Positions 16,393 to 40,654 of a stretch of DNA of 64,000 nucleotides are shown piece after piece (the first letter of the stretch is position 1; every line of letters begins with the position of its first letter). Origin of the DNA: Entomortierella parvispora E1425 (Eukaryota > Fungi > Mortierellomycota). The DNA lies in contig BQFW01000013.1 of assembly GCA_020891255.1 (NCBI GenBank), positions 2,356,001-2,420,000 of the forward strand. The letters run 5' to 3'. The notes beneath the pieces are model-generated. The model saw only the letters and a list, made by a program, of their open reading frames with translations. It searched no databases and was not told the origin of the DNA. The position numbers were made by a program, and so were the translations under genes.

Positions 16393-16755
16393 ATGTATCG
16401 CCTTACGCTGAGCTTCTCTATTATACTGAGTTTGATATCCTTCTCCGACGCAGATTTTACCATCTCAAGCGGCTACATCTGTAAATGGTCGGACCATTGT
16501 CAAAGAAATCAAGCGTGGTGTGGGACGAAATTCAATATTGGATCAGATGAATGGATAAGATATGCAACCACAAAACATGAGAACAAAGGTATCAAGTGCG
16601 GGGATGTGTGTGGAAGTTCTAATGCGAACAATTGGTGCTTTGATGCATGCAACAAGGAGTATGGGAATGTTTGTTGGATTGGCTACAAAGTTCTAGAATG
16701 CAGATGCAATTCTATGGGTCGCTATTGCAGCACAGACGATGTAGAAGATTGTTAA
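16393..16755 (+). CDS. Small secreted cysteine-rich protein (120 aa, 12 Cys) with a CS-alpha-beta/defensin-like C-terminal Cys spacing
   Basis: Signal-peptide-like MYRLTLSFSIILSLISFSDA; C-x3-C-x8-C-x3-C-x7-C-x8-C-x-C-x6-C-x7-C at the C-terminus; intronless. Confidence 0.8.
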   Translation: MYRLTLSFSIILSLISFSDADFTISSGYICKWSDHCQRNQAWCGTKFNIGSDEWIRYATTKHENKGIKCGDVCGSSNANNWCFDACNKEYGNVCWIGYKVLECRCNSMGRYCSTDDVEDC

Positions 16756-17793: not shown

Positions 17794-19011
17794 GTACTTT
17801 TGCGAATCCTGTTCCTGCTTTCAACGTGAGCCATCCTCGTCTGAATCCTGCACGCCAAATATTGTCGTCGTCGGATACGTTCAACAGCGCCTGAGTAGCA
17901 TACGCGGCTTGGAAGACCAGATATGGATTCTCAGTGGACTCTGATTCCCGAAGAAGATCCGTGAGTGGTCCATGGATGTTAATGCGGTCGACCTCTCCAA
18001 TATCGGCGCCCACCATCGCATCTAGCACACGCGACACCGCAAGAAGTAGATGGTGTCGATTTCGAATGCTCTCCGGGTGAGTGGACTGGAGCTTAGTCTG
18101 TGGAGAGTCAAGAACCCTCACAAGGTCGCCCGAATCGATAGATCCTAGTGCGGCGCCTTGGATCACCTTAGCCAGTCCTTCCAGAGAATGTAGATTCAAA
18201 ATTGCAGAGTTGTTGATAGTGTCGATGAATGCCGTGATAAAAATCCGAGAATATTCGCTATCGAGCACTGGGGCCAACAGGACAACTTTGGTAACAGTGG
18301 CTGCATCCTTCAGGGCATCCTTTTTAAATGCCTCGACAATCTGCACAGATGTGGTTTGTAGGCGATCCTTCTCATCCAGGGTTTTCCATGTACTGTGTCG
18401 CCATTTAAGAGCATCCGGTGAGAGAACATCCTCTAGGACTGACTCCTGCAGCAGTTCGAGACTATAGGCAAGTTGATAGGTACTTTGAAGTGACTCGTCT
18501 GGACCTGGCAGCGCGCACCGAGCAGGCTCAGGATTCACGTCCTTGCTGAAGAACAGCGGAGACTGCTGAAAGCTGGAAGCCGCTGAGAGAGATGTTTGAT
18601 TGAGAGATGGAAGATGTGCTGGTAGCCGCCGCTATGGATACTTTGATCAGAGACGATGATGACATGACGCCCTTGCAGATCTTTTTCTCGTCTAGTTTTT
18701 GCCTAGTAAAAAGTCGTTATGAGGTTAGAGACACTTGCAAGAAATCGCTCAATGCTGACAGGAGCAAAAGAAGAGTGGCCTACCAAAGAGTCTGTGCTCT
18801 CTGTCTGCACTTGGCAGCCTCTCCTGTTCTTTGGAGTGATCCAGCACCACGGCGAGCTCCCGGAGCGCATCAACCTTGCCAGTCAGGGTAGCGGTGGCTA
18901 CTTGGCTCTTTCGTAGCGCTTGATGACCTTCCTTCTAGAACCTTATGTTTTTCGGGCGGCCACTATATGTGCCCTTGCTAGCTCCAACGGCTTTTGTGCA
19001 GGAAGCGTCAT
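17794..19011 (-). pseudogene. Truncated duplicate of the NLR-like gene (N-terminal and ARM-like part only, no NACHT)
   Basis: Exon 1 has a deletion and a TAG (~18899-18901); 2-nt loss in a (TC)n run at ~18585-18595; homology stops at GFAKV (17794). Confidence 0.85.
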
Positions 19012-19728
19012 GTCGACCCTACTGTGCTGCATGCTGCAGGTCAGAGAGATGGACAAGAGGATCGGTAAAAATGTAAACAGGAGGGTGAGTTGCGAACAAA
19101 GTCGAAGAGGAAAGAAACAAAAACGGAGGAACGGTGCTCCCCTTCCTGAGGCCGTTTCTTCCCGCTAACCACATCGGCCATGTGAGAATTCACAATCCTG
19201 TGCACAAAGACACAAAAGCGTATTGGTACATGTTGCGGCTGTTGCTGTTCCTGCGTTAAGTTCCGCGTTTGCTCTCTCTTGCTTAGGGGCCAGTTATGGA
19301 TGACAGTATATAAGAACTCACCCTTGATTAGGAGTCCAAGGATGGAGGTGCATGGGGCTCATGGATGAAATGACCACGTCGTCCATGGCGACTGCCATTG
19401 ATTGTCCCTTGGTGCGTGTCTGTCCTCATTGTGCAGTGTGGTTTCGTGTGAAGATGGACATGCGACCAAAAGGAGAACAAAAAAGAGAGCGACAATAATG
19501 TGGCTTAGATTTGCACTCGCATATGCGTCTCGCACAGATGGATGCGCGTACTGACACCGCGTCTCTTTTCCTTCCCCTCTCCCCTCTTCACTCCACTCGT
19601 CCTCCTCGCACTTCCTCCTCGCTTGATCTCCTCGCTTGATCTCCTCCTATGATCAGCTTGGCCCTGCTCCACCACTCATGCCTTCACCCTTCCTGCGAAA
19701 TCAATCTCTGCTTTATCTGAGCAGAGTC

Positions 19729-20435
19729 ATGTCCGCTTGACCGTCCATGCTCGCCTTGCATGGTCTTCATTTCTGCAAGGCAGGCATTCTCAGACTGGGA
19801 CTACCCCCGACTTGTTCCCCCCTGTTGGGATCCCTCTCGTATTTCCGTAATGCATGCATGCTTGCATGTTATGCATGCATGCTTGCATGTTATGCATGCA
19901 TGCTTGCATGTTATGCATGAGCCCAGCTGGACATGTCCCTGAATGTAAGTGGAACGACGAGCTCCTCCGAATGCAATTAGAACTAAGACTCATGGCTCCT
20001 CCTCCTCCTCTTCAATATAGTAATGACTTGACAAACAAGACATCCGGCCAGCCTCACGAAGGGCCTTAAAGTCAGGAGGACCTCAGCCGTGGCTCTTGAA
20101 CGCATGAAACAAGCTAGACGAATACCGCGTGTCGCAAGTGGGATGCCCTTCCCACCAATCTAACAAGCTCAAAAATGAGCGCTGGACGAGGCGCACCGCA
20201 GGAGAACCGTGAGCTGAATTCTCCTATCCTGTTCACCAAGAATACGGATACCTATGGTGCAACGGCTATCTACACGGGATGTTATCGATCCACGCGCATA
20301 CTTGGTTCATGAAGCGAGCAGGAAAAGATGACAAAGAGTTGTTGGTGTCGTCAGCGATCTCCTCCGACCAAACCGACCCAACTTTCCTCAAATGCTTCTT
20401 ATTTTTCGTCAGATTGGTGGCAAGGGACAAGCGCT
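19729..20435. repeat. Copy 2 of the 7204-7865 segment
   Basis: Colinear with 7204-7865; directly abuts block A copy 2. Confidence 0.85.
19850..19920. repeat. 21-bp tandem repeat ATGCATGCATGCTTGCATGTT x3.3
   Basis: Units at 19850, 19871, 19892 and partial 19913; the paralog at ~7325 has only one short unit. Confidence 0.95.
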
Positions 20436-22017
20436 GAGAGAAAGCCTGCTGGGATGCAGTGCCGTCTCCTAAATACCCATAACCGCCTTTACGCTGTCGC
20501 GCTGGAGTGTGCCAACCGCATCGATATTCCACACGATGTGGTCCTCACTCTTCACATTCTACTCTTCACATTCTTTGCTGCCACATTCCTTGTTCATGAG
20601 TTGAACCAGTTTAATGCACTGTCTACTTTTCATATTAGTTTGACCCCACTGCACATCGGTCATGCCTCACTCTCGGACGAATCAAGACAAATCTTCAGAC
20701 GGGACGGATGCCGGTTGGAGAGCTGAACTGAGAGGTCTTTCTATTTTCGTGAATGTGTTAGTGGCCACCCTCGGACAAGGATTGCTTTTATTCTTTGATG
20801 CAAGGATGATGCAAAAGTCTGGTCCAGGAGTAGGAAAAAATTGCCCGAACAATAGGACTCGGTCTTACATCCACTCATCAGGATGTGATACCGCTATCCC
20901 ATGGAACAAGGATTATTATACTTGTAAGTATGTTCCCAAGTCTGTATAATTCGCAGCTACTCGATAGTATTCTTGCTGGACCTCGGGTTTATTTCATTTT
21001 ATTCTAGCGTTGTTGCGACTCGGGCGACAAACAAGGCCCAACAGGACTGCCGGAATTAGTCTGGGAAGGTGTTATCACTGGAAAATGGAGAGTTCGAATT
21101 ATTTGGAAAAGTAGAAGACAGGGCGCGTCGTTGTTCATCCTAGCCTTTTTTTTTCTCTTTTTCTTTGGGGGGGGACAATAGCAAAGATGCCGGAGCAGTC
21201 CTTGCAATGCTGCAGGTGCCTATTTGTTGAAAAGATTGACGATATCCTTCTACTTGTGTAAGTAATCTTTGCTCTTGGATTCTGATTAACTGTCTTATTG
21301 GATATTAATACGATATTGGCAACCCCTCTGGACTACGCAATCTTGTCAATTGTTGCCATTTCAATAATTTCAATAAACAATGAGCCACGGTGCAAGGGTT
21401 GATATGCACCCCTCGAACAGATGAAAATGTGGTGTGCCGCTCCATCCCTTTTGCTCGTTGATTGTCTCTCTTGAAACTACTCGCCTGGTGCCAAGGAGCA
21501 GGCGGTCTATAAGATTGGGAACGGTTCGGATAGTGCTGCACACAGTCCAAGACAAGTAAAGACGTTGTGGTCAAGATTATCATTGACTCCGTTGTCCGAT
21601 TGGAAGAGCAAGAATATCAGGTAATACAGGTACCTTCATCAGGCAGCACAGTTGTCTGTTCTTCGTAGATTGTAGCTGCGTCATCTTTCTTGCTTGACAT
21701 CTACATGCTCAGAGCATCGAGGATTCTCAGGAGTCAACGAGGCATCCAAATGCAGTCAATTAAAAAAACGAGTGCCAAGGATGAAAAGGAGGAAAGCACA
21801 ACGAGAATGAGAGTCTATCATCAAGACTGTCGCCACCTATACCCTGTCCTTGTTTAGTTCCAATTCAAACGGACTGTCATACCTAAATCGTACCCCTAAC
21901 CAGAAGCAAGATGGCGAAGTTGAATAGCAATCCACACTTTTGAACATCCTTTCCTTCAACCATACTTATACTTTTTTACCAGTACAGTCTTTCACAGCGG
22001 GCGATATCTAACGGTCA

Positions 22018-25000
22018 ATGAAGCCCCACACACTGCACGCCCTCGTGGCGCTTGTCAGCGTGGCTTGCTTTGTTGGGTCTAGCCACGGCGTCGATAGTTA
22101 CAGTCAGGGGCACGACGGGGCTGGCGCGCTAGCCGCTGAGAAGCCCGTTGACGACCAAAAGTGGTCTAGTCGTCATAACCACAGGAAGCATGGGCACGAA
22201 CAAAAAAACCGCCACCACAAGATGCCAAATCATCCTGGTCATCACCATCATTCAAAGAAGCAAAAGTGCAAAGGTAAACAAGAGAGATAAATGTGAAAAT
22301 CTTGACGCGTTTTCGCTCACTGCAACGCGTAGCCCATCCTCTCTCATTCTTCCTGCAATAACAGAGAGAAGATTACTGAAGTGCCTTCTACCATTTTCTA
22401 TTTCTTTCTGGCAATGACGCCAAGTAGAGCAACTGAATCTTGTCTGCGACAGCATTGTCATTGACAAGATCATCTGTCCCTGCAAGAAAATCGTGCCTCT
22501 TGCTGAGGGCGACTCTGGCGCAGATGTGGCAAATGGCGATATAACAGCTGAGTGGAACACCCCCATACGCCAGGTCTACATCCCAATGGATGAACCTTGC
22601 TCCAACAAGCTTCCACCCATTTGCACCATGCCCTCCGAGACGGGTGCTGTTGACAACTCTGACAATGATGAAAACAGCAACTTTGACACCACTCCTGATA
22701 GCGATAACCACGGTTTTATTCCCAGTGAGCCTGAAACCAACGAGAGCAACGATGAAGGCGACAATGAAGATGAGGACGAGATCAATGACGATTCCTCGGC
22801 TGCCTCAAACCAGGCTCTACTCCCAACCGCCGATGCTTCCGAAGATGTTATGGCCCATCTCTGGGACAAGGGCCACTGCCACCATCGCACGAAGCATGGT
22901 AAGGACCATATCCATCCTCACAAGAAGCATGCCAAGGATAATGGCCATGGGCACAAGAACAAGCACCCATATCGAGATCGTTGCGTGGCTGTTGGCCATT
23001 TCTGTGGCAACCAGCTCTACGGATGCAACTTTGTGGCAACGAGCTTGTACTACTGCTCTCATGTTGGCGACATCCCTAAGACGATTCTCGAAAATGCCAA
23101 GGTCTGCGGCGGCAACAATGGCAACTGCGCGTGTAATTCGGAAAACACCCTCTGTGGCTCCCAGCTCCCTGCCGAGTGCAATGCCAACCCCAACTCGATC
23201 TACTTCTGCCCTGGTGGTAAAGGCCAGTGGGAACACCTCAAGCAGTGCGATCCTGGTACGAAGTGCAATCAGGAAGGCAACGATGGCGCCAACTGCGGAA
23301 GCACAAACTGCCAATGCCTTGGAGATAAGACCATATGCTCCGATGCATTCCCTGCTGGATGCAAGCTCATCCCCAATAGCATTTATCAGTGTACGCCTAG
23401 TAACAAGCCCGTTCTCATCAAGACCTGTGATGAGTCTCGAACCTGTGTCACCCATGCAGACGGAGCTGTTTGCACACAGGGCGACTGCAAGTGCCCCGTT
23501 GACGGCAAAGTTTGTGGCAGCGTATTCCCTCTCAAATGCCGCATCCACGCAACAGGCTTGTATACCTGCACAAAGGGTGCAGATCCAATCTTCTTGAAGG
23601 ATTGTTTGCCTGGAAAGTGCGTATCGTCTGCATCCTTACTCGGTGCAACGGCTGTCTTTCAGGACAGCCGATGCATTGCACCCTGCACCTGCACTGACAA
23701 GAGACTTGTAAGATCCCTTTAACTAGGCCGCGTTAGAGCCTGGAAAATTGATGATCACTGTAATATTCTACTAACGCTCAATGAACTATATGCATCTTGC
23801 TCCCACCATCTCGTTTTTGATAGGTTTGCGGATCCACCTTTTCACCCTCTTGCAACTACGGCCAGAATATTCTTTACAGTTGTTCTGGTGCTGGAGCGCA
23901 TCCAGTTCATATCAAGGACTGCAGCCCACAACAATGCATTGTACAGGCCGGGGATAACACGTGCGGCCCTAACCCGAACCCATGTGTCTGCCCTGCTGGT
24001 AGCAAGGGTCTGATCTGTGGATCTTCTCTCCCTCCCAAATGCAATGGAGACCCAACGACCATCTACGACTGTTCCGGTGGCGAAGGAACGACTCCTGTGG
24101 TTGTCAAGCATTGCGACCCTGGTACCAAGTGCCTTACAGATGCCAATGGCGACCCAACATGCGGATTCCAGAAATGTCAGTGTTCAGGCACGAAAACTCA
24201 CTGCTCGAACCAGTTCCCACGAGACTGCAAGCTTCCACCCAATAGTGTGGTTCAGTGCAAGAATGGCAAGCCAACTGTGGTTGAGACATGCCCTGATGAT
24301 CGAACATGTGTGTCGGTCCCATCTGGCGCCTTCTGTGCATCAAACAGTTGTATTTGCCCAGACGATGGACAGATCTGTGGATCGGCATTCCCCTTGTCAT
24401 GCAAACTGCAACAGACATCTTTGTACTCTTGCAAGAAGGGTGGATTGCCAGTCCTGCTCGAGTCCTGTCTGCCTGGATCGTGTGCGTCATCTCAGGCGAC
24501 TGTCACTGCGACGGCTGCAATCTTTGACGCGTTGGCCATCATGGATACATGTGTGCAGCCTTGCACATGCACTGGTTCTGGCAACGTGTGTGGATCGACC
24601 TTCTCACCCTCTTGCACCTATGGCCAGAATTCTCTTTACAGTTGTTCTGGTGCTGGCGCATATCCAGATCTCATCCAGGACTGTAGCCCAGAACAATGCA
24701 TTGTTTCACCCGATGATAACAATTGTGTCCCTGATCCACCAACGACAGCTGGCCCTACAATAGGAGGTGGTCCACTAGGAGTCCCAACAACCGCAGCTGG
24801 AGGTGGTCCACTGGATGTCCCAACAACTGCAGCTGGAGGTGGTCCACTAGATATCCCAACAATTGGAGGTGGTCCACTAGTTGTCCCAACAGCTGCAGGT
24901 GGTCCACTAACTGTCTCAACAACTGCAGGTGGCCCACCAACGACAGCTGTCCCAACAACCACAGGAGGTTCACCAACTGCAAGTGGACCACGAACTACAG

Positions 25001-28000
25001 GCGTCCCAACAACTACAGGTAGTTCACCAACTGCAAGCGGATCACCAACTGCAAGCGGGTCACCAACTGCAAGTGCTCCACCAACTACAGGTGGTCCACC
25101 AACTACAGGTGTCCCAACAACCACAGGTGGTTCACCAACTGCAAGTACTCCACCAACTACAGGTGTCCCAACAACCACAGGTGGTGCACCAACTGCAAGT
25201 GGACCACCAACTACAGGCGTCCCAACAACTACAGGTAGTTCACCAACTGCAAGTGGACCACCAACTACAGACGTCCCAACAACTACAGGTAGTTCACCAA
25301 CTGCAAGCGGATCACCAACTGCAAGCGGATCACCAACTGCAAGTGCTCCACCAACTACAGGTGGTTCACGAACTGCAAGTGCTCCACCAACTACAGGTAG
25401 TTCACGAACTGCAAGTGGATCACCAGCTACAGGCGTCCCAACAACTACAGGTAGTTCACCAACTGCAAGTGGACCACCAACTACAGGCGTCCCAACAACT
25501 ACAGGTAGTTCACCAACTGCAAGTGGATCACCAACCACTGGTAGTTCACCAACTGCAGGCGGATCACCAACTGCAAGTGGATCACCAGCTACAGGTGTCC
25601 CAACAACCATAGGTGGTCCACCAACTGCAGGTGGTTCACCAACTACAGGCATCCCAACAACCACTGGTGGTCCACCAACTGTAGGTGGTTCACCAACTGC
25701 AAGTGCTCCACCAACTACAGGTATCCCAACAACCACAGATGGTCCACCAACTGCAAGTGGTGGCTACCTAACATCCGTGTCAACATCCCCTTTGACTACT
25801 TCGACCCCAATTGCCGCCACTGTGTCTCCCTCCTCGTCTGACTCATGGACGCTCCGTTCAACTCAAATCAACACCACTTCCTTCACCAGTGAACCCTACG
25901 TGGCCAATGGGTACATTGGGGCCCGTCTGCCAGCTGAAGGAGTCGGTCTAAGGATCCACCCCGCCATCGACTATAACACGGACAATGGAACGCAGGACTG
26001 GCCCCTCTACAGCCTGAGGCAGACAGCATCCATCGTGGCGGGGTTCTACGACCAACAGGACACGACCAGAGGCAACAATTTTGTAATTATCCCTTCCCTT
26101 TTCGTTTTTGTTTTTGTTCTATTCTCATGAACGATGATCATTCCCCGCATCATCTTGTCTTGATCAATGCGGCTTAGCTTCAGTCGATTGACTTTTTTTT
26201 TTCTTTACTGCTTTTCTATTCGCTCTCATGCTCTGCCTTTGCCGCCATCTTTTGTCTTCTCTCCATCAAGGACATAGCTGGAGGTCATCAGGTCATTTCG
26301 CTCCTACCCACTTGGACCTCCCTATTCCTGACCGTGTCTCCGAACCAGGGAGATGGCCCATCCGCTACTTACAAGGTTGGAGTTCCTCTCGACCATATCA
26401 AATCCTACTCTCAGACCCTATCTTTGCGAGATGGCATCGTTCAAACGAACGTCTCTTGGTCCCCCTTCAATGCCACCAACAGCTCAATAACAGCTGCCTC
26501 AACGGGATCTGATCTGATTCAGCTCAATTACACCGTTCTGGCTCACCGCTCTCGACCCAACCTTGGACTAGTCCGTCTCGACATCTCGGGTCTTTCTGAC
26601 GGCCAAAATGTCATCATCACCGATGTACTGGACGGTGCTGGAGCCCGCAGGGTCGAAGGCGAGCAGGCAGGAAAGTTGGATACCAAGGAGCTAGCAAATG
26701 CCATCTTCTCTTCTGTGAGACCTACTGGCATCGACAATACAACTGCATGGGAGATTTCAACCTTGCAGTTGATCGGAGGAAATCAGACGGCACTGACGGC
26801 TGTGGATGTCCCAGAGAGTGTTGGTCTTGGCACCAACCAATCCACCATATCTCAGTCCTACTCTTTGACGGCACCTCGGGGCGGTCAGCTCTCCGTGTTC
26901 AAAGCCGTCGGAATCGCTTCCTCAGACGCCTTCAATGGAACAGAGAGAAAAACAGCTCTGGAGGCAGCCCAGAAAGCGCTCGCGGACAGTTGGGATGAAC
27001 TCGTTTCTGAACATACATCAGCGTGGGAATCACTGTGGTCCGAAGGTGGTGAAGTTGTGATTCATGGTGCCAATATCTCAAACAGCGGAAAGTCGGTTTT
27101 GGACGATATTCAGGAAATCACTACATCGAGTCTCTTCCACCTCTTGTCGAACGTTCGTCAAGGATCCGAGAATACAGGATTGGGCGACAACAGTATCGCG
27201 CCTTCTGGCTTGACATCTGATTCGTATGCTGGCGGAATCTTCTGGGATGCCGAGACATGGATGTATCCAAGTCTATTGTCTCTATTCCCAGACTACGCCA
27301 CGAGCATCAACAATTACAGGACAAAGCTCTTGGGACAAGCTATTGAGAATGCCAAGCAGAACAACCGAGAAGGGTTGCTCTACCCATGGACTTCCTTCCG
27401 CTACGGAAACTGCACAGGTAAGGAGGTTTTGTGTGGTTCATAAGTTTTAGTTTTGGAGTTCGATACTAATATACCTTGTAAACGTGACTCATAGGAATTG
27501 GACCCTGTTACAACTATGAATATCACTTGAACAACGACATTGCTCTTGCTCAATGGCAATACTTCCTGGCCACAGGAGACAAGGTCTGGTTGGAGGAGAA
27601 GGGCTATCCGATCATGAAGGGTGTGTCAGAGTTCTGGGCCAGCCAAGTCATCAAGGATACGCAGTCTGGGTAAGCTCAAATCGATGCGATGTACAGTAGA
27701 TGATCTTTTTTTTTTGTTGTTACTAATGGTCATCGACTCGTTTGCTATCTTTTATGAAATAGAAACTACAATACATCGAATGAGGTAAGATAAAAACAAA
27801 TGACGTGCACCGTTGCTTTTCTATTACTCACATGCTATCGCTCTTCTTCTTAGACTGACCCGGATGAATTTGCCAACAACAAGGACAATGCTGCCTTCAC
27901 GAACGCAGGCGCAGCCATTACACTTCGCAACAGTATTCAGGCGGCATCTATCCTTGGTCTCTCTAACGAAGTACCTAGCAATTGGAGCGACATTGCCGAC

Positions 28001-29146
28001 AAGATCACGATTCCATATGGGGACTCCGGAAATATCGTGCTGGAATACGAAGGCTTCGACGCATTCACTCCCGTGAAACAGGCTGATGTTGTATTGCTCA
28101 TTTACCCTCTCGAGTACAAGGTCCGGGACGCAAACGCGGATATGGCCTTTTACACCGGTGCAACCAGCCTCAACGGTCCAGCAATGACTTTTCCCATCTT
28201 CAGTATCAATTCGGCCCAGCTGTCCACGCAGGGTTGCGAGGCCTTCACATACCTCCTTCAAAGCAGTCAACCTTACACTCGAGGACCATTCGCTCAGTTT
28301 TCGGAAGAAATCAACGATGTCTTTAATGACAATGGAGGCACCGATCCAGCCTATACCTTTTTGACGGGCCATGGCGGCTATCTCCAGATTTGGACCCATG
28401 GCTTAACAGGATACCGGTCTCGTCTTGACTGCTTTTACTTGGATCCAAGTCTGCCTCCTCAATTGGCGCCAAAGGGATTCACTGTCCGGGGTATGAAATG
28501 GCAAGGAAGTGTCTTTGATGTCACAGTCGCCGGTAATCAAACGACTATCACGCGACGATCTGGTGGAAATGCCACGGCCTGTGTTCAGATCGGAGATCGA
28601 AACAACAAGAATGGAAAGTACCAGCTTGCCGTGGGAAAGACTTTAACTGTGCCTACATATCGAAGTGACCTGAACGGAACTTTGGTCGCCGGGAACAAGG
28701 CCCAGTGTGCATTGACGGTCACCTCTGATTCTTCGACGGCACCAGGACAATACCCCTTGGCTGCCGTGGATGGATCCAATGCAACCTGCTGGAGATCCGC
28801 CACGAAATCACCAGCGTCGTTGTTGATTGACCTGGGCAAGGTTCAAAATATCACGGGATTCCACTTCAACTTCAAAAGCAACCCTCCCAACTCTTATACC
28901 GTATTCGCTGGATCAAGCACCAACACCGAGGATATGAAGCAGGTCGGAGAGGTTGACAAGGTCAAGATCACGGCCCCCTATGATCCTCAGACGGCGGGTA
29001 TCGTCATGGTGCGATTGGGCAATACCAGTGATATCTCTCTGGCTCAGTCGATCCAAGCCCGCTTTGTGAAATTAGTGGTGGAGGGTGCACTGATTGATGA
29101 TGGCTCCAACTATGGCGCTACCGTGGCCGAGGTTGTTGCCTTTTAA
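22018..29146 (+). CDS. ATH1: Secreted modular GH65 acid trehalase (~2143 aa): signal peptide, His-rich/acidic tracts, 9 Cys-rich modules, Pro/Thr/Gly stalk, GH65 N/central/C domains, C-terminal F5/8-type-C-like domain
   Basis: Inferred exons 22018-22273, 22428-23707, 23824-26082, 26271-27417, 27495-27669, 27763-27784 and 27854-29146 (6432 nt, in frame). GH65 motifs PYVANGYIGARLP, DSYAGGIFWDAETWMYP, YEYHLNNDIA, TDPDEFAN, VKQADVVL, FLTGHGG. Confidence 0.9.
24740..25765 (+). repeat. Coding Pro/Thr/Gly mucin-like tandem repeats (GGGPLDVPTTAA; PPTTGVPTTTGGSPTASG)
   Basis: Repeated ccaactacaggt / ccaactgcaagtgg units. Confidence 0.95.
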
Positions 29147-30067
29147 ACATTTATTTGTGCCTTCCAAATAAAAAAATTATTTATAATACTGCAAGTATTA
29201 TTAATAATAGTCTATTTAACACCTGAGTTATGCCGAGAGGGACAGAAAGAAAGGCGTCAAAAACGACATCCACTCATTGTGCTGCTACCAAGAGGTCTCA
29301 ACCATATGCTGTCTTTAAGGCTCCATCCGAGGCTCAGACTTGTGCTATCATGGCTGTCTGATAATTGAGGTCTAAGGGAGGTAAAGGACGCATTAGATGC
29401 ATTATTCGAGAGAGAGGGCAGAGGAAAGAGTCGCGTTCAAGTGGCATCCGAGCGGTCCAGGATGACAGCTGGTCTTACCTTGAGATTTAGAGGCAGCTGT
29501 GAGTGCAGCTGTGGTCAAGGAGGAGTTGTGAATCAGTGTTTGTGCGAGGAAAGGAGGAAAGGAGGAACGGAGGAAGGAGGGAAGGGAGTCTTTGCATGGT
29601 CATAAACAGAGAAGGAGCCAAAGAACCACCCTCTGACATCACCGAGCAGTCTCCAGTCGGGAGTGCTGCAACACCGCCATGTCGCGCCTCTTTCTTTGTT
29701 CTCTTTCACTCTGTTAGGATGCACATTCTTGCTTTGTCTTTGTATATCCACCCTTGCCGCCTTTTATCGTCCTTTGGCTCAAAGAGCAACACGCCACAAC
29801 ATAGAAGGTAATCAGGTCGTCAATAGGCCAATGATGTTTTCCAATGGAGGTTTGTCATGTCTTAGCTATAGATATACAAATGATCTTGGAGAGCCAGGAT
29901 ACACGGCGCGAAAGCCATTTTTTACATGCGTTAAAACCAATCTGTAGAAAAGACCGCCTCTGCAGACCCAGGATAAAGGGTGTGAAAGCCATATTTTTAT
30001 ATACGCTAGAACCAATCTGTAGAAAAGACCGCTCTTGGAGTCCCATGCTAGAATTTGTTGGATGGCC

Positions 30068-30330
30068 CTTCCATCCATCCATCCTCCCATCCATCCATCC
30101 TCATTTCATCCATCCTCATTTCATCCATCCTCATTCATCCTTCCTCATTCATCCACGCTCATTCATCCATGCTCATTCATCCATCCTCCCGTTCGTCCAT
30201 CCTCATTCGCATCCATCCATCCTCCTGCCATCCATCAATTCATCTTCCTGTCCATCTATTAATACCATTCATCCAGCGGCCAGTCCCTCCTTCCATCTTG
30301 TGTCTCGGCGTCCAATCCCTCCGTCCCTCC
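30068..30330. repeat. (TCCA/TCA)n low-complexity tract
   Basis: catccatcc/tcattcatcc reiterations. Confidence 0.85.
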
Positions 30331-30804
30331 ATCATGACGAAGAGATGACCAGCAAAGGAACTGTTCCTCCCACCAATGCAAAAAAACTTGACCCATCGAA
30401 GGCCTCAGAGGAGACGATTGTACGATCTGCGCCTAACTTCTATCTCCTCATCGAGTCAACTTCGATATCGGCGAGCGACACAAAGTCAACCATTTAGTCC
30501 TGGATGCAGGCATTCCTCTCGTCATATCTGGTTATCTTGAGCATCCTAACAAGCAAGGCTCAACCATTATCACCCCACGAGGCAAAAGGCTGGCGGGTCT
30601 CAAATAAAACACTCTAGTCTTCACTTCCAAAATTCAAACTGAAACAACAAATATGTTGAACTCTGTATATGTCCTGTCGGTACTCTTGTGTTCCATCTCC
30701 TGGAATTGTGGATGGTACGTATATCTGTTGAGGTTTCTGGCTTTTCTTTTCCGACCTTGCTTGTGTCCACTCCACCCTAACTCTATTGTAATTTACTCTG
30801 TACA

Positions 30805-32429
30805 GGACCCTGCGAATATGTTGTTTGACAAGCCGGAATGGTTCGGCTATTATTTGATGCCTCGGAAAGATCCCGACAAACAACTTTCAGCCGCAGCCCA
30901 CTATGCAACTGCGAGCAATCTCTTTTCAGTGGCGGGTGTTGTTTCAAAGAAGAAAACTCATGCCCAGCGAGGTACCGGTTGACGCCACGCTCAGGATGCT
31001 GGAGCCAACGTTGCATCCATCGAAAATCATACCTGATGAGGAAAAGGCCGTTTAGCGATCAACTACTTGTCCAGGATATCTGATCAAGTTCCTTGCGAGA
31101 TGGCAGGTTGTACAGTGCTCTCCCGGGTGAACGGTTATGGCTCGCAAGGAATACCATTCTACTACCTATGGACCTCCAGCGAATGCTTTTCCCGTGTGCC
31201 GAGGAGTATGCCAAGGGGCATGAAAGTTGTGCCGATTGGCTGCAGTGGAAAAGAACTTTATGTTGGACAAGGACATTTACTCTAAACGACCAGCAAAGAC
31301 AAGGATAGAAGCTCCTAAACAGAACGTTCGACTGGTGCGCACGTTGTTTCTCTTGACGCACTTGCGGAAGGTGATTTTACAGGATGCCATCGCCTTGATG
31401 GACCTCCCCGACGTGCCGTTTCGCCACGATGACCACCGAATCTTCCAACAACCAGCACTAAGCTTGATTAACTCGTTATTCAGGCAGTTCAGAGTCGATT
31501 TAAGCAAGTGTACGCAGTCCACAAATCACCCATGGAGGATAGTCTTATTGCCAACGCGCCTGCTATTCACAACGAGTTTCGCACAGTGCACTCTTCTGTT
31601 CAGCACCTAGGTCACTCTCTCGCGGTCAACACCAAATAATCCAGCAACCTAAGTTGTCGCTGGACGCCGTTACTCAGCAGTTCACTACCGAGGATGTCAT
31701 AAACATGCAGACTCTGGATCGTGTGTATTGCTATATGGAGAAGATAGGAGAACATGGTTCATACAGCGGCGAGAGAGACGACGTCCCCCGGGCCGCCGAC
31801 GCAGCCTTCAGCTCCACTAGAAACTGAGGATGGACTGGCATGGTGCGGAAAACTGCAAAATAGAGCAGAGCCACAGGGTTCGGCAGGAAGATCAGGAGGG
31901 GGCCAGGGTGGAGAAAAGAAGGAGTGCAATAAGGAGGACGGACGCGAAAAGAGACAGGATGGGCCCATAGGTCAGAATGACACGGTCGAAGACTCTCCAA
32001 TCTTGGGGCAGAGACTGGTGGCACTGGAGACGGAGTTGGCCTCTCGGTATGACCAAGTGCCGCCCCAATACTCTTGAGGAGGTTGATCGTACAATGCCGC
32101 CCCGAAATGCTCCATTTCAACAGCAGAGGGACGAATGGTTCAAGGATGTGCAAGAGCGTCACTCGCTCCGCGTATTAAAGAAGACATTCAAGTCAAGGTG
32201 GCGCAAAGGAGGTGGAAACACGTTGGCCAAGACATTCTCGTTCAAGAAGGCCACTGTGTTATCCATTCTTCAGCAGATCCTGTACGATGAGAACGGAACA
32301 ATGGTCGAGAGAGAGGCGCGAGTGTTGGCATTCATTGTCAAGGGCTTGAATGCCGGTACTACACCGAGACAATACTATCTTCTTGTTCAGAAGAAGAGCA
32401 TGCCCAGAGCTGGATCAGAGGAGCCTTGA
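30805..32429 (+). mobile_element. Decayed Crypton-like (CryptonF) element: Ndc10-II-type tyrosine recombinase + GCR1_C-like domain
   Basis: KKTHAQRGTG*RHAQDAGA...NYL (HxxR and Tyr), LARNTILLPMDLQRMLFP, LRKVILQDAIAL...IFQQP, DEWF...LKKTFKSRWR...FSFKK; several stops and frameshifts. Confidence 0.7.
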
Positions 32430-33776
32430 AAGAATAAAATCCAGTTAGGATCGCCGTGATGATTGTTCTCGTTTCTTGTCTTCCTTTCTTTCTTGTCAGC
32501 CATCCGTCATTTTCGTTTCCCCTGCGACAAAAAAAAAGACATTGATCAAGCGGTAGATCAAGTTGTACCGACTTCTTTTCGGGCTCAGTTGCGTTTGTCT
32601 TCTGCTCCTGCCTCGCCATTATTATGTGCACACGTATATGAACATAAGTGGAACCTACCCGCCTTTATCACATTCAGTCAAAGGTAATGTGCCCCTGCTC
32701 GTTGTGCATGCTTTGGCCACTATAGTCCATGTGTCATCAAAAGACCCCTACTCTTTGTGGTGAGACTATGGTAGGTGAGATCGTGCCAATATAATAAAGC
32801 TCATCTCGAAAGCGTGGTGCCCCACGTAGCTGATAACGTTGCGTGTGTTCACAACTTGACGACAGATGTCTCCAATAATTTGAATGCATGCTTGCGCGCT
32901 CTTTGAGCCTCCCTCCCATACAGTGTCAATGCAGAGAAAGAAGTCATTCTCAAGAGCGCTGCTCGGCACTTGGGCATGTTGCAACTTGTATCAATTGGGC
33001 CAAAGAGGCAGACGCTCAAACCTCAAATGTCTTCCCATTGAGACGCCCAGCGGGTATTGGGTGTCTGGACGCTGTCCTGCGGAGACTTTCAATCAACGAT
33101 GGAAGAAGTAGTGAGTCTTCGCTCAAGGTTGCAACGCGTGTCTACAGCTTTAATGACCCTCTCATTCCACTCCACTCCAACCCCTACCACTCCATTCCAA
33201 CGCCTACCGCTCCAAAACTCTAACCCCTACTACTCCAAAACTCCAAACCCTGCCACTCCAACACTCCAACCAGTCCCAACTTAGTTACCATAGCCAGATA
33301 GACATATATATACCCCCTCCCTCCAACTCATAAACATCATTCGCTTCTCCAAATCTGCCTCTCCCTGTCCTTGTACTCCCCTTGGTCCCTGCCTTGTATT
33401 CCCCCCCTTGCACCTATTACAAAGGTCTTCTATCCAACTTCCTGTCACAGACACTGTGAAAGGTAGTCAAAGAGCCGAGGTCAAATCATGTGGGAGCGAC
33501 CTTCAAAATGTTACTGGGGAGTAAAATTCATCGCAGTGATGCGCTTGACGTGGAAGGAAGAATTCCTCAGATTCCAGTGGCAGTGGCCGTGAAGATTTTC
33601 CGAAAATTGACGCTAATGAGGAATTTTTACTGGGGCAGAACCATTGATATTTGACAAGGGAGCTAAGAATTCTTTAACTGCAAAGGAAGGCCGTCATCAA
33701 AAAAAAAAAAAAAAAAAAAAGTGCAAAGGCAGGCCGAACAAAGTGCAGTCAACTAAACAAAACGAGTGCCAAGGAC

Positions 33777-34225
33777 GAAAAGGAGGAAAGCACAACGAGA
33801 ATGAGAGTCTAACATCAAGACTGTCGCCCCCTATACCCTGCCCTTGTTTATTTCCAATTCCAACTGACTATCATGCTTAAATCCTACCTTGACCAGAAGC
33901 AAAGAAAAGGAAGAAAGCACAACGAGAATGAGAGTCTAACATCAAGACCGTCACCCCCTATACCCTGTCCTCGTTTAGTTCCAATTCCAACGGACTGTCA
34001 TACTTGACTCCTACGCCAGAAGCAACGATAAGGAGGAAAGAACAACGAGAATGAGAGTCTAACATCCAGACTGTCACCCCCTATACCCTGTCCTAGTTTA
34101 GTTCCAATTCCAACGGACTGCCATACTTAACTCCTACGCCTGACCAGAAGCAACAAAAAGGAGGAAAGCACGAGAATAAAAGACGTCTCAAGAGACTCTC
34201 ACCCCTATACCTTGTTTATTCCGAA
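33777..34225 (+). repeat. ~127-bp unit repeated ~3.5 times upstream of the ricin-bearing gene; single copy at ~21783-21910 upstream of the trehalase gene
   Basis: Unit aaggaggaaagcacaacgagaatgagagtctaacatcaagactgtc...ccagaagcaa. Confidence 0.9.
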
Positions 34226-34288
34226 TCGCGAACCACATATTCTTTTTTACCAACACAGTCTTTCACAGCGGGCGATATCTAACGGTCA

Positions 34289-37200
34289 ATGAAGCTCCAC
34301 ACACTGCACGCCCTCATGGCGCTTGTCAGCGTGGCTTGCGCTGTAGGGTCTAGCCACGGCGTTGATGGTTACAGTCAGGAGCACGACGGGGCTGGCGCGC
34401 TAGCCGCTGAGAAGCCCGCTGACGACCAAAAGTGGTCTAGTCGTCATAACCACAGGAAGCATGGGCACGAACAAAAAAACCGCCACCACAAGATGCCAAA
34501 TCATCCTGGTCATCACCATCATTCAAAGAAGCAAAAGTGCAAAGGTAAACAAGAGAGATAAATGTGAAAATCTTGACGCGTTTTCGCTCACTGCAACGCG
34601 TAGCCCATCCTCTCTCATTCTTCCTGCAATAACAGAGAGAAGATTACTGAAGTGCCTTCTACCATTTTCTATTTCTTTCTGGCAATGACGCCAAGTAGAG
34701 CAACTGAATCTTGTCTGCGACAGCATTGTCATTGACAAGATCATCTGTCCCTGCAAGAAAATCGTGCCTCTTGCTGAGGGCGACTCTGGCGCAGATGTGG
34801 CAAATGGCGATATAACAGCTGAGTGGAACACCCCCATACGCCAGGTCTACATCCCAATGGATGAACCTTGCTCCAACAAGCTTCCACCCATTTGCACCAT
34901 GCCCTCCGAGACGGGTGCTGTTGACAACTCTGACAATGATGAAAACAGCAACTTTGACACCACTCCTGATAGCGATAACCACGGTTTTATTCCCAGTGAG
35001 CCTGAAACCAACGAGAGCAACGATGAAGGCGACAATGAAGATGAGGACGAGATCAATGACGATTCCTCGGCTGCCTCAAACCAGGCTCTACTCCCAACCG
35101 CCGATGCTTCCGAAGATGTTATGGCCCATCTCTGGGACAAGGGCCACTGCCACCATCGCACGAAGCATGGTAAGGACCATATCCATCCTCACAAGAAGCA
35201 TGCCAAGGATAATGGCCATGGGCACAAGAACAAGCACCCATATCGAGATCGTTGCGTGGCTGTTGGCCATTTCTGTGGCAACCAGCTCTACGGATGCAAC
35301 TTTGTGGCAACGAGCTTGTACTACTGCTCTCATGTTGGCGACATCCCTAAGACGATTCTCGAAAATGCCAAGGTCTGCGGCGGCAACAATGGCAACTGCG
35401 CGTGTAATTCGGAAAACACCCTCTGTGGCTCCCAGCTCCCTGCCGAGTGCAATGCCAACCCCAACTCGATCTACTTCTGCCCTGGTGGTAAAGGCCAGTG
35501 GGAACACCTCAAGCAGTGCGATCCTGGTACGAAGTGCAATCAGGAAGGCAACGATGGCGCCAACTGCGGAAGCACAAACTGCCAATGCCTTGGAGATAAG
35601 ACCATATGCTCCGATGCATTCCCTGCTGGATGCAAGCTCATCCCCAATAGCATTTATCAGTGTACGCCTAGTAACAAGCCCGTTCTCATCAAGACCTGTG
35701 ATGAGTCTCGAACCTGTGTCACCCATGCAGACGGAGCTGTTTGCACACAGGGCGACTGCAAGTGCCCCGTTGACGGCAAAGTTTGTGGCAGCGTATTCCC
35801 TCTCAAATGCCGCATCCACGCAACAGGCTTGTATACCTGCACAAAGGGTGCAGATCCAATCTTCTTGAAGGATTGTTTGCCTGGAAAGTGCGTATCGTCT
35901 GCATCCTTACTCGGTGCAACGGCTGTCTTTCAGGAGAGCCGATGCATTGCACCCTGCACCTGCACTGACAAGAGACTTGTAAGATCCCTTTAACTAGACC
36001 GCGTTAGAGCCTGGAAATCGATGACCATTGTGATATCCTACTAACGCTCAATGAATTATATGCATCTTGCTCCCACCATCTGGTTTTTGATAGGTTTGCG
36101 GATCCACCTTCTCACCCTCTTGCAAGTACGGCCAGAATACTCTTTACAGTTGTTCTGGTGCTGGAGCGCATCCAGTTCATATCAAGGACTGCAGCCCACA
36201 ACAATGCATTGTGCAGGCCGGGAATAACACGTGCGGCCCTAACCCGGACCCATGTGTCTGCACACAAGGCGGTCAGGTTTGTGGTAGCAGCCTTCCTCAA
36301 GTCTGCAATGCTCCCCAGAATGCAATCTACGACTGCTCTGGCGGTGCTGGAACCACACCCAAGCTGGTGAATCAGTGCAACCCTGGTCTGACTTGTATCA
36401 CCCACAATGACGGCAGTGTCAACTGTGGTGGCCAAACCTGCAAATGCAGCAATACTCAAACTGCTTGCTCAAACGAGTTCCCCGACAGTTGCGCTCTCAC
36501 TCCTAATTCTGTGTATCGATGCTCGTCTTCCGGTAAACCCGTTCGGGTCAAGACCTGCACAGATGGGCAGCTGTGCATCTCACTTTCTGATGGCGCAGAC
36601 TGCACAAGCAACAGCTGTAAATGCCCATCATCTGGCGACCTTTGTGGTTCACGATTCCCACCAGCATGTGGCCTCATCGCCTCAGCTCTCTACACCTGCA
36701 CCCAGGATGGCGACCCAGTGCTGTCTAAGGATTGTACTCCAAGACGATGCTCAACAGCGTTATCGGCTCTGACAGGTGTCATGACCAAAGATCGCTGCGT
36801 AAATGCTTGCACATGCCCGACTGGCGGCTTTGTAAGTTTGGTTCATTTGTTTTTGATAGATATCTTGTCATATCTCATTTGTCCTGGCTGCTAATATTTC
36901 TTGAAATTTCTCACCTCAATTGAAATAGATGTGCGGATCGACCTTCCCTCCTCAATGTAAACTTAACAGCAAAGCTCTGTACTCCTGCAGTGGTGCAGGT
37001 GCTAAGCCTGTGATTAGTTCGACATGCGATAATGGCTGCATTGTCAGCGTCGGTGACAACTCTTGCTCTGATGGTCCAGGATGTGTCTGCCCTGCTGGAA
37101 GCAAGGGTCTGATCTGTGGATCTGCTCTCCCTCCCAAATGCAATGGAGACCCAACGATTATCTACGACTGCTCCGGTGGCGAGGGAACGACTCCTGTGGT

Positions 37201-40200
37201 TGTCAAGCATTGCGACCCTGGTACCAAGTGCCTGACAGATGAAAATGGCGAGCCAACATGCGGATTCCAGAAATGTCAGTGTTCAGGCACGAAAGCTCAC
37301 TGCTCGAACCAGTTCCCACGAGACTGCAAGCTTCCACCCAATAGTGTGGTTCAGTGCAAGAATGGCAAGCCAACTGTGGTTGAGACATGCCCTGATGATC
37401 GAACATGTGTGTCGGTCCCATCTGGCGCCTTCTGTGCATCGAACAGTTGTATTTGCCCAGACGATGGACAGATCTGTGGATCGGCATTCCCCTTGTCATG
37501 CAAACTGCAACAGACATCTTTGTACTCTTGCAAGAAGGGTGGATTGCCAGTCCTGCTCGAGTCCTGTCTGCCTGGATCGTGTGCGTCATCTCAGGCGACT
37601 GTCACTGCGACGGCTGCAATCTTTGACGCGTTGGCCATCATGGATACATGTGTGCAGCCTTGCACATGCACTGGTTCTGGCAACGTGTGTGGATCGACCT
37701 TCTCACCCTCTTGCACCTATGGCCAGAATTCTCTTTACAGTTGTTCTGGTGCTGGCGCATATCCAGATCTCATCCAGGACTGTAGCCCAGAACAATGCAT
37801 TGTTTCACCCGATGATAACAATTGTGTCCCTGATCCACCAACGACAGCTGGCCCTACAATAGGAGGTGGTCCACTGGATGTCCCAACAACCGCAGCTGGA
37901 GGTGGTCCACTGGATGTCCCAACAACTGCAGCTGGAGGTGGTCCACTACATGTCCCAACAACTGCAGCCGGAGGTGGTCCACTGGATGTCCCAACAACTG
38001 CAGCTGGAGGTGGTCCACTACATGTCCCAACAACTGCAGCTGGAGGTGGTCCACTGGATGTCCCAACAACTGCAGCTGGAGGTGGTCCACCAGGTGTCCC
38101 AACAACTGCAGCTGGAGGTGGTCCACTAGTTGTCCCAACAGCTGGAGGTGGTCCACCAGGTGTCTCAACAGCTGGAGGTGGTCCACTAGTTGTCCCAACA
38201 ACTGCACCTGTAGTTACCAGAGGTCCACCAGGTGTCTCAACAGCTGGAGGTGGTCCACTAGTTGTCCCAACAGCTGGAGGTGGTCCACTAGTTGTCCCAA
38301 CAGCTGGAGGTGGTCCACTAGTTGTCCCAACAACTGCACCTGTAGCTACCGAAGGTCCCCCAACGACAGGTGTCCCAACAACGACAGGTGGTTCACCAAC
38401 TGCAAGTGGTTCACCAACTACAGGTGGTTCACCAACTACAGGTGGTTCACCAACTACAGGTGCTCCACCATCTGCAAGTGCTCCGCCAACCACGGGTGGT
38501 TCACCAACTGCAAGTGGTCCACCAACGACAGGTGGTTCACCAACTACAGGTGCTCCACCATCTGCAAGTGCTCCGCCAACCACGGGTGGTTCACCAACTG
38601 CAAGTGGTCCACCAACGACAGGTGGTTCACCAACTACAGGTGCTCCACCATCTGCAAGTGCTCCGCCAACCACGGGTGGTTCACCGACTGCAAGTAGTCC
38701 ACCAACTACAGGTGCTCCACCATCTGCAAGTGCTCCGCCAACCACGGGTGGTTCACCAACTGCAAGTGGTCCACCAACTACAGGTGTCCCAACAACCACA
38801 GGTGGTTCACCGACATCAAGTGGTCCACCAATTACAAGCCCAACAAGCACCGGTGTCCCAACAACCACAGCCTCCCCAACAACTACCACAACGGCTTGCC
38901 CTCCAGCAGCGACTGGGGTCATCACAAACCCGACTTCAGGAATGGTCTTAAACGTAGACGTGGGCTACACCAGTCCAGTAAGTGCTTTTGCGAGTAGGCT
39001 GATGATTGTTGGAGGGAGCAACCAAACATGCAATCTACTAATGATGTTTCCCGCCTTCATTTTCTTGGACATGTTTTCTTTAATCCAGAATACTCAAGTT
39101 ATACTGTGGGCAGGCAATGGATCAGCTCTCGCGTGGAATGAGTTTTGGACATTCAATAATGGAGTCATATCACTCGCTGCAACAAACGCTACCAACCCAG
39201 TTATACCCCCAGCTACTTACTGCCTAGACACACAGGCGGTTACAGGATCTAATGACAATGTGGTTATAAACCCTTGCAACGGGTCAACCACACAGCAGTG
39301 GACCATTAGTTCATCAGGCGCCCTTACGAACGTTGCCAGTGGCAATTGTGCGACTATATCCAATGTTATAGATCTCTTTGGCCATGGATTGGCGATAACT
39401 ACATCCCCCTGCAATGGCGATGGTGACCAGATCTGGGCCGCCCCACCTGGGTGGATCTGTCCCGGTCAGTCTTTGCCTCCACCATGCAATCAGGCCCCAG
39501 CTGCAAGTGGGGAAATCACAAACCCGGCCTCGGGAATGGTCTTAAACGTAGATCGGGGCTTTCTCACTGCAGTAAGTGCTTTTGCGATTGGACTGATATT
39601 AAGTGGAGAGAGAGCAAACCAAACATGCAATGTACTAATGATGTTTCCCACATTCATTTTCTTGATGTTTTCTTTATTCAAGAATAATTCAATTGTGCTG
39701 TATCCAGGCAACGGAACAAATCTCGCATGGAATGAGCTCTGGACTCTCAATAATAGGACCATATCAGTCACTGCAACAAACGGTAGCGGCTCAGCTATAC
39801 CCCCATTTACTTACTGCCTAGACACACAGGCGGTTGCAGGATCTAATGACAATTTGGTTTTGAACCCTTGCCAGCCCGGGTTACTCTCACAGGAGTGGGC
39901 CATTACTTCATCAGGCGCCATTATTAACCTTGCCAATAGTCAATGTGTGGCTATATCAAGTACATATAATGTCACTGCAATTCCTGCGTTGATCATGAAT
40001 GTAGCCCAATGCAATGGCAGTGATGACCAGGTCTGGGCCACTCCACCTGGGTGGCGCTGTGGATCCAGTTATTCTTTGCCACCACCCTGCAATCAGGCTC
40101 CAGCTGCGACTGGGGTAATCACAAACTCGGCCGCGGGAATGGTCTTAAACATAGACAATGGCAATCTCACTGCAGTAAGTGCTTTTGTGAGTGGGCTGAT

Positions 40201-40654
40201 TTGTTGGAGAGGGAGCAACAAATCATACAATGTACTAATGTTGTTTCCCACATTCATTTTCTTGGACATGTTTTTCTTCTTCAAGAATACTTCGATTATA
40301 TTGTACGGAGGCAACACCACGTGGAATGATCTTTGGACACTCAACAATAGGGTCATATCAGTCGTTCCAACAAATTTGACCAACCCACCTATATCCGCGG
40401 GTGAATTTTGCCTAGACACTGCGGCGGGTACAACACCTAATGACAATGTGGTTCTGAACCCTTGCAGCGGGTCACTCACACAGGAATGGGCCATTACTTC
40501 ATCAGGCGAGATCATGAACCTTGCTACTGGCGATTGTGTGACGGCATCCAGTCCAAATGTAACTACATCCCCTTGTAGTGGCAGTGGCAACCAGACCTGG
40601 GTCAGTCCGACTGGGTGGGCCTGTTCCGCGCAAACGATTCACGTACTACCGTAA
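34289..40654 (+). CDS. Secreted modular lectin-like protein (~1888 aa): same N-terminal chassis as 22018, 13 Cys-rich modules, Pro/Thr/Gly stalk, three ricin-B (R-type, CBM13-like) domains
   Basis: Inferred exons 34289-34544, 34699-35978, 36094-36831, 36929-38977, 39089-39571, 39683-40174 and 40286-40654 (5667 nt). Ricin hallmarks YCLDT, NPC..QQW/QEW, C..DQIW, repeated three times. Confidence 0.88.
37840..38895 (+). repeat. Coding Pro/Thr/Gly tandem repeats of gene 2
   Basis: GGGPLDVPTTAA-type units expanded relative to gene 1, plus APPTTGGSPTASG units. Confidence 0.95.

Follow-up and report, generated by a model that had tools for sequence, protein, structure and literature searches.

A probable young chimera of a cysteine-rich secreted scaffold and an acid trehalase in Entomortierella parvispora

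The question raised by this locus is how one secreted front half came to carry two unrelated C-terminal parts (heads). The window is the whole stretch of 64,000 nucleotides analysed here (Entomortierella parvispora E1425, assembly GCA_020891255.1, contig BQFW01000013.1, positions 2,356,001 to 2,420,000 of the forward strand). It contains two neighbouring genes: gene 1 (22018-29146), which ends in a GH65 acid trehalase, and gene 2 (34289-40654), which ends in three ricin-B lectin units. The initial annotation read the pair as a dedicated system, in which the repeats of a Pro/Thr stalk act as a recombination joint for exchanging payloads on a common chassis. The answer proposed here is that gene 1 is probably a young chimera, made from the front half of its neighbour and a stand-alone trehalase gene, within a lineage-specific modular family. 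The assembly comprises 38.66 Mb of nuclear sequence in 19 nuclear contigs plus the mitochondrial genome; it was obtained at 409x Nanopore coverage with Illumina polishing, and one mycelium RNA-seq library was sequenced (PMC8759367).

Two heads on one front half

Self-BLAST of the window aligns 21964-23991 with 34235-36261 (98.57% identity, 2028 bp) and 23982-24932 with 37081-38043 (96.27%, 964 columns). The two genes have in common 54 bp upstream of the ATG, the signal peptide, His-rich and acidic tracts, two intron positions, the cysteine-rich (Cys) array and the start of the stalk. The heads are recognised by Pfam, each within one open frame. The pairing of these front halves with different heads is real and far beyond chance, and on both points the initial annotation was right. 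The two fusions lie inside single uninterrupted open reading frames (ORFs), 24097-26130 and 36929-40654, and are therefore independent of any splice prediction. Both genes and the features described within and just upstream of them are on the forward strand.

Gene 1 (assembled model) has seven exons (22018-22273, 22428-23707, 23824-26082, 26271-27417, 27495-27669, 27763-27784 and 27854-29146) and encodes 2143 amino acids (aa) without internal stop; its introns are all GT..AG. The order of parts is signal peptide, His-rich and acidic tracts, two Cys supermodules, Pro/Thr stalk, and GH65 acid trehalase with an F5/8 type C domain. A supermodule is about 250 aa long and consists of four related modules of 55-65 aa, each with 8-10 Cys. 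Exon 23824-26082 carries a Cys supermodule, the entire stalk and the first 107 GH65 codons. The stalk (24730-25760, 344 aa; repeat analysis) is made of Pro/Thr/Gly/Ser repeats, 36-nt units followed by 18-nt units. Pfam finds PF03636, PF03632 and PF03633 (GH65 N-terminal, middle and C-terminal domains) and PF00754 (F5/8 type C). By these domains the head is an acid trehalase of the ATH1/ATC1 type; it is collinear, without stops, with the annotated 996-aa protein EMPS_03855. The GH65 introns are at the same positions as in EMPS_03855, and two of them are supported by the spliced RNA contig of that paralogue.

Gene 2 (assembled model, introns all GT..AG) is the resident, donor-type gene. It has seven exons (34289-34544, 34699-35978, 36094-36831, 36929-38977, 39089-39571, 39683-40174 and 40286-40654) and encodes 1888 aa: a front half with three supermodules, a stalk of 355 aa (37829-38893; repeat analysis) and the ricin-B (beta-trefoil) units (38894-40654). 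ORF 36929-40654 spans a supermodule, the stalk and all three ricin units. The units start at 38894, 39482 and 40085 and are ~78% identical in DNA to each other. Pfam matches three stretches to Ricin_B_lectin (PF00652, E-value (E) 1.1e-30); six Q-x-W motifs, two per unit, agree with a ricin-B/CBM13 beta-trefoil.

Gene 2 carries 819 bases absent from gene 1 (36262-37080; self-comparison and gene model): one Cys supermodule with intron 36832-36928. The second supermodule of gene 1 is a hybrid, whose start matches supermodule 2 of gene 2 and whose remainder matches supermodule 3. Its junction is at 23982-23991, where two alignment blocks overlap by 10 bp. Hybrid and overlap are the mark of a deletion by recombination between repeats. 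The module held only by gene 2 is merely 75-79% like its neighbours, which argues that it is old and was lost from gene 1. With a hybrid supermodule and an old module missing, the front half of gene 1 is the derived copy.

The trehalase parent, the joint and the timing

The genome contains exactly two GH65 loci and no other GH65 fragments. The second locus is EMPS_03855 (contig C5), annotated as a stand-alone gene. Its DNA matches 25761-27600 at 95.06% over 1841 columns, across an intron, and the likeness begins exactly at 25761. It matches 28600-29153 at 96%, and the likeness stops 7 nt beyond the stop codon of gene 1. By DNA comparison, 25761-29153 is a DNA-level copy of EMPS_03855 that starts at codon 12, keeps the introns and extends 7 nt beyond the stop. 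Codon 12 belongs to the EMPS_03855 signal peptide (MIISSFLLNSLGYLILVSTSPF... vs ...PTASGGYLTSVSTSPL...). The N-terminus of EMPS_03855 is MIISSFLLNSL-GYLILVSTSPFTTATPIAANVSPSSSDSW; gene 1 reads ...PPTASG-GYLTSVSTSPLTTSTPIAATVSPSSSDSW at the joint. A relic of the signal peptide is thus found inside gene 1, at 25762-25800 (GYLTSVSTSPL in gene 1 vs GYLILVSTSPF).

The true joint of gene 1 is 25760/25761, with at most 3 nt (TGG) of microhomology by inspection. Past 24932/38043 the two stalks are alike only at the repeat level (74-81%), via 18- and 36-nt Pro/Thr repeats. Both consist of the same two kinds of repeat, in matching order, and are of nearly equal length (344 vs 355 aa), so the fusion joint is not where the alignment breaks off. 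The initial annotation had placed the end of similarity inside the stalk. This holds for the alignment, which is lost at 24.9 kb/38.0 kb, and not for the joint, which is at the end of the stalk of gene 1.

The GH65 relatives (n=31) are all stand-alone proteins of 437-1035 aa. In 12/12 of those whose N-termini were read, the protein's own signal peptide directly precedes the enzyme, without stalk. A 7.5-kb contig of another sample under this species label (X3) aligns with 25761-29149 at ~92%; upstream of 25761 it has stand-alone signal-peptide DNA, with the same 30 letters as the C5 gene, and X3 shows GH65 solely in stand-alone form. Outgroup N-termini and the X3 contig indicate that the stand-alone form is ancestral and that the GH65 part of gene 1 is a DNA-level copy with its introns kept. 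The reverse derivation, of the C5 gene from gene 1, is rejected by the same two lines of evidence. Simple tandem duplication is rejected as well: it predicts a third stand-alone GH65 ~12.3 kb upstream, and the genome has two GH65 loci with unduplicated flanks. As the GH65 donor has no stalk, the joint did not come from homologous recombination between stalk repeats. Gene 1 is a chimeric gene of known anatomy, with both parents identified, breakpoints mapped and the direction of the event polarised by outgroups.

Divergence between the two front halves is uneven: 7.4% in the upstream region, 3.5% in exon 1 (with six amino-acid changes around the signal peptide), 0/154 in intron 1, 1/1281 in exon 2, 7.8% in intron 2 and 1.6-3.6% in the later Cys part. 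A near-identical tract (22149-23664) has 1 difference in 1516 bp, intron 1 included, between flanks that differ by 3.5-7.8%; 21.7 differences are expected (Poisson P(<=1) ~9e-9). As the tract takes in an intron, it is attributed to recent gene conversion, not to selection. The conversion appears to be later than the fusion and makes the front half look younger. For the GH65 pair, the synonymous divergence (dS) is 0.089 and the two introns together diverge by 6.3%. Neutral divergence is about equal in both halves of gene 1 (6-9%). The unconverted non-coding front half (7.4-7.8%) resembles the GH65 pair, which argues that the two halves were copied at similar times, perhaps in a single composite event.

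Gene 1 is intact: 2143 codons are open and six splice-site pairs are kept. The ratio of nonsynonymous to synonymous divergence (dN/dS) between gene 1 and the parent GH65 is 0.41 over 486 codons, and near 0.9 in the first 107 codons of the pair. Amino-acid changes polarised with 22 outgroup sequences are 34 derived in gene 1 vs 9 in the parent. At near-invariant GH65 columns gene 1 keeps 204/214; unique replacements number 10 in gene 1 (G79D, F83Y, T105N, Q109I, Y561F, L609P, S669P, Q707E, N719D, P870S; GH65-part numbering) vs 0 in the parent. The GH65 head of gene 1 thus appears to evolve faster than its parent. Four substitutions occur in the nine bases 26271-26279, right after an intron acceptor, and change AQT of the parent to DIA in gene 1. 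Under neutrality, 3-6 stop-creating substitutions are expected in the 985-codon GH65 part (P ~0.004-0.05; a rough estimate at ~2.5-4.5% branch divergence). The intact 985-codon head argues mildly for constraint on gene 1.

RNA was studied as Logan contigs of a run labelled 'DNA?' (X2), for one growth condition. The X2 contig of the C5 trehalase skips intron 27418-27494 exactly and the other intron approximately; a spliced contig indicates that X2 is the RNA-seq library published with the genome. In X2 the stand-alone trehalase of C5 is abundant (depth 189). It is strongly expressed on CMMY medium (X2; PMC8759367). One low-depth X2 contig (3.1) has the gene 2 variants at 24777-24780.

The Cys-array family and the surroundings of the genes

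More Cys arrays are found in the genome on contigs C14, C5 (three genes), C9, C4, C2 and C11. In most paralogues a phase-0 intron follows every supermodule. A supermodule profile search of 1.84 billion representative proteins gave 179 clusters. The family hits that were looked up by name are all from Mortierellaceae (Entomortierella, Lunasporangiospora, Linnemannia, Mortierella, Actinomortierella, Gryganskiella); EMPS_03839 (E. parvispora, contig C5) is a member. One family protein has up to about two dozen matched array stretches. No description of the family was found. In the genome only gene 1 and gene 2 form a near-identical pair; the next best front half is 48% identical.

Heads were surveyed in the best 150 of the family representatives and in the genome paralogues, as the initial annotation had proposed for relatives. 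At least four kinds of C-terminal head are found on the Cys array: domain X, domain Y, ricin-B and GH65. Domain X (~450-500 aa, few Cys) is the commonest, with 20 among the best 150 representatives (P0034 is one) plus the three C5 genes (C5:1139-1148 kb, 1153-1156 kb and 1778-1785 kb). Domain Y is found in the C14 and C4 genes and in representatives P0063 and P0076, with ~4 repeats in the C14 gene. Ricin-B heads are found in P0143 (Mortierella sp. NVP41), P0053 and the C9 gene. GH65 is found in none of the 150 best family representatives. Among proteins of 683-2172 aa, a search with the triple ricin part gave no close relative; nor does the genome have a close copy or fragment of the gene 2 ricin units, only ~38% relatives on C15 and the one C9 unit. 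No linker separates the last Cys module from domain X or from the ricin unit of C9, and domain Y stands behind a linker of ~30 aa; the long stalk is present only in some family members. On these comparisons, 'one scaffold, several heads' is fair for the family, and the stalk does not serve as a joint in general.

The C9 gene (C9:64-78 kb) has a Cys array that spans ~14 kb and ends in a single ricin-B unit without stalk. This unit closes with ...QLWTLPLGWGC, as the gene 2 units end, and has an intron at about the position found in gene 2. In gene 2 each ricin unit has one 111-nt GTAAGT..AG intron (38978-39088, 39572-39682, 40175-40285; gene model). These introns are in frame and stop-free, so that a 1241-codon ORF stays open through all three; retention would add 37 aa within each lectin unit.

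The fold of the Cys modules was modelled with AlphaFold (mean confidence, pLDDT, 88.5 for a supermodule and 88.9 for a single module). For one module, the best Foldseek matches are PAFC and bubble protein (template modelling score (TM) 0.53-0.54, 28-30% identity over 57 columns, E 0.5-0.7); the four-module model has no match at E<=0.001. Searches of the ESM Atlas by shape reach only TM ~0.3. An exhaustive structural comparison (VIA) of the single-module and four-module models gives only 14 PDB chains with Z>=2 and none above Z 4.5; 7-8 of the 14 are chitin binders of CBM14/peritrophin type (CBM, carbohydrate-binding module). The CBM14-type chains (Der p 23, chitotriosidase CBM14, Avr4, Blo t 12, tachycitin) have Z 2.1-4.3, all <5. 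The modules have no Pfam match at E<=0.01, the six-Cys PF01607 included, and PDB sequence searches with family profiles gave nothing meaningful and no solved CBM14 structure. A remote structural relationship of the modules to chitin-binding or antifungal mini-proteins is possible. Chitin or wall binding is the best guess for the array; with such Z values and without Pfam or PDB sequence matches, it is a guess. Domain X (15 members) and domain Y have no Pfam match either, and domain X has no match in the PDB, nor in the ESM Atlas by features. A weak match to Clostridium P47 (E 0.004) was not repeated in 15 relatives and was dropped.

A 127-bp repeat unit is found upstream of both genes, as a single copy before gene 1 (21747-21909, 89.7% identical to 33739-33902) and as three tandem copies before gene 2 (33739-34153; self-comparison). 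A regulatory role for it is possible. The spacer between the genes (29154-33738, unstranded) consists of dispersed repeats, with no recognisable payload cassette by genome comparison and Pfam. Pfam finds no domain in the ORFs at 29.2-33.7 kb and 40.6-42.3 kb, only a weak GCR1_C hit. A 145-bp piece of the spacer (29900-30045) has at least 25 genome copies, many of them 5-40 kb from contig starts; it could be a subtelomere-associated element. Upstream of the genes, 2570-20434 is a mosaic of segmental duplications: 4520-7083 corresponds to 9907-12483 (93.5%), 2570-4486 to 17794-19684 (82-88%) and 7325-7861 to 19900-20434 (89%). By this mosaic, the chimera lies in a duplication-prone neighbourhood.

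Origin, rival explanations and known systems

The proposed course of events is as follows. The resident parent would be gene 2, a member of a Mortierellaceae-specific secreted family built from ~250-aa supermodules. Its 5′ portion, which begins with the upstream repeat unit and ends at some point within the stalk, would have been copied and joined in frame, non-homologously, to a DNA copy of EMPS_03855 (codon 12 to just past the stop, introns kept). The joining would have replaced the upstream region and the start codon of the trehalase, half of whose signal peptide would persist as a relic within the protein. Gene 1 would afterwards have lost one supermodule through repeat recombination; a 1.5-kb stretch would have been homogenised with gene 2 by gene conversion; the stalks would have diverged through gain and loss of repeat units; and the GH65 head would have evolved faster than its parent. 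As to how the protein works, we infer that the Cys array may tether it to a polymer of the surface, for which wall chitin or chitosan is a candidate. With the presumably O-glycosylated stalk as spacer, the protein would display its trehalase or lectin head. In a wider and doubtful version of this proposal, the array would be a lineage-specific surface-display platform on which heads (X, Y, ricin-B and, latest, GH65) were grafted several times; the graft of gene 1 would have been caught within ~0.09 synonymous substitutions per site of its birth, and would give a wall-tethered trehalase beside the free one.

Several points weigh against the proposed chimera or its details. The divergence timing is rough, and the two duplications may be separate events. 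The matches on which wall binding is based are weak (Z<5), with no Pfam or PDB sequence hit. The relaxed evolution of the GH65 head is compatible with decay as much as with new function, and no X2 contig matches the GH65 part of gene 1 at >=99%, where contigs show presence, not absence. A rather unlikely alternative is that segmental duplication left gene 1 as a by-product without function, which is expressed little or not at all and decays towards a pseudogene, and that only gene 2 and the C5 trehalase matter to the fungus. The lack of a gene-1-specific RNA contig in X2 beside a highly expressed C5 paralogue fits such a by-product, as do the 34 vs 9 derived changes, the 10 vs 0 replacements at near-invariant columns and the dN/dS near 0.9 over the first 107 GH65 codons. 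An intact frame of 2143 codons with six splice-site pairs does not, nor do the overall dN/dS of 0.41 and the 3-6 stops expected neutrally in the 985-codon part (rough, P ~0.004-0.05); moreover, a single growth condition was sampled (PMC8759367). The joint itself is supported by the 409x Nanopore assembly, Illumina-polished (PMC8759367), by the lack of a conflicting loose end and by an in-frame, separately diverged copy; no short-read bridge is displayed, and ~1 kb of short-period repeats adjoins the joint, as would suit an assembler that wrongly linked the stalk gene to the trehalase gene. Such an artefact is nevertheless very improbable. In the short-read contigs of the source sample (X1), every bin of 23800-29400 is covered; at 25794-26490 two GH65 sequence types are present, window-type and C5-type, so a second diverged copy exists, and the sole loose end at 25761 is a C5-type contig. 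The joint is in frame, and the copy is separately diverged, by 5%, and has a distinct 3′ flank from 7 nt past the stop. The possibility of misassembly raised by the initial annotation is thus countered.

The dedicated chassis-and-payload system, with the stalk repeats as recombination joint and heads repeatedly swapped as in polymorphic toxins or adhesins, is improbable. It agrees with neighbouring genes that have near-identical front halves and unrelated heads, a scaffold-side break within the stalk or at its end, four or more head types in the family and a duplication-rich region. It does not agree with a GH65 donor that, like its relatives, is stalk-free, nor with a non-homologous break in signal-peptide codons, and the stalk as joint is abandoned on these grounds. 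It fares no better as a general joint, as domain X and the C9 ricin unit are attached without stalk and domain Y with one of ~30 aa. The genome has one recent copy pair, the next best front half being 48% identical; spare head cassettes are found neither near the genes nor elsewhere in the genome; 0/150 representative family proteins have GH65; and the triple ricin part has no close relative in the length range searched. What survives of the chassis with alternative heads is the variety of head types across the family, with one recent swap. For gene 1 the young chimera is preferred. It represents an unusually clean birth of a fusion gene in an early-diverging fungus, with parents present and breakpoints at base level; gene 1 further keeps a fossil signal peptide and a measurable conversion tract, and its head appears to outpace the parental enzyme in evolution. 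The locus also brings to light very large secreted proteins of a family confined to Mortierellaceae. Should the array anchor proteins in the wall, these soil fungi would have in this family a means of diversifying their surface.

Five known kinds of system are compared with the locus. Secreted fungal enzymes that act on carbohydrates typically combine an array of binding modules, a Pro/Thr linker and a catalytic domain. The statement of the initial annotation that no described fungal system has this layout is therefore not retained; what is new is the module family and its fusion to GH65. Like modular carbohydrate-active enzymes (e.g. CBM1-linker-cellulases), the two genes combine in one polypeptide a signal peptide, small disulfide-rich modules, a long Pro/Thr linker and a hydrolase or CBM13-type lectin head, all in one frame, with a putative binding role for the array. 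Unlike them, their modules have no Pfam hit and the array is N-terminal, behind His-rich and acidic tracts. The Cys-array extension is absent from 31/31 GH65 relatives, and neither CBM nor carbohydrate-binding module nor additional domain occurs as a term in a 2024 review of GH65 (PMC11442529). GH65 enzymes that carry an extension of this kind appear to be new to description.

Peritrophins, peritrophic-matrix mucins and other CBM14 proteins (Avr4, tachycitin, Der p 23) likewise have tandem small Cys-rich beta modules and a mucin-like tract. They differ in having 6 Cys per module vs 8-10 here; the four-module supermodule with its conserved intron, the lack of PF01607 and Z 2.1-4.3 also set the present modules apart. 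Penicillium bubble protein/PAFC is the best Foldseek match of one module, with the whole 64-aa protein covered (VIA Z 4.1). These are free 64-aa proteins and not arrays, and the match has E 0.5-0.7 and no sequence-profile link. With polymorphic toxins and modular adhesins the locus has in common that neighbouring paralogues keep the N-terminal part and differ in the C-terminal one. Here, in contrast, the heads are not toxins, and there are no immunity or other partner genes, silent cassettes, donor recombination sequence or shared joint sequence, nor many recent exchanges; the likeness to such systems proposed by the initial annotation does not extend to their mechanism.

A jingwei-type origin is that of a chimeric gene from duplicated pieces of two parents. 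As in such chimeras, the upstream region and 5′ exons are from one parent and the enzymatic body from the other; both parents, gene 2 and EMPS_03855, are still present, and the breakpoints are mapped to the base. The enzyme part differs from a retrocopy in being a DNA copy with introns; the break is inside a signal peptide, now an internal relic, and gene conversion with the neighbouring parent blurs the age. Modular layout and chimeric gene birth are thus already known kinds, and the novelty of gene 1 lies in the module family and in its fusion to GH65.

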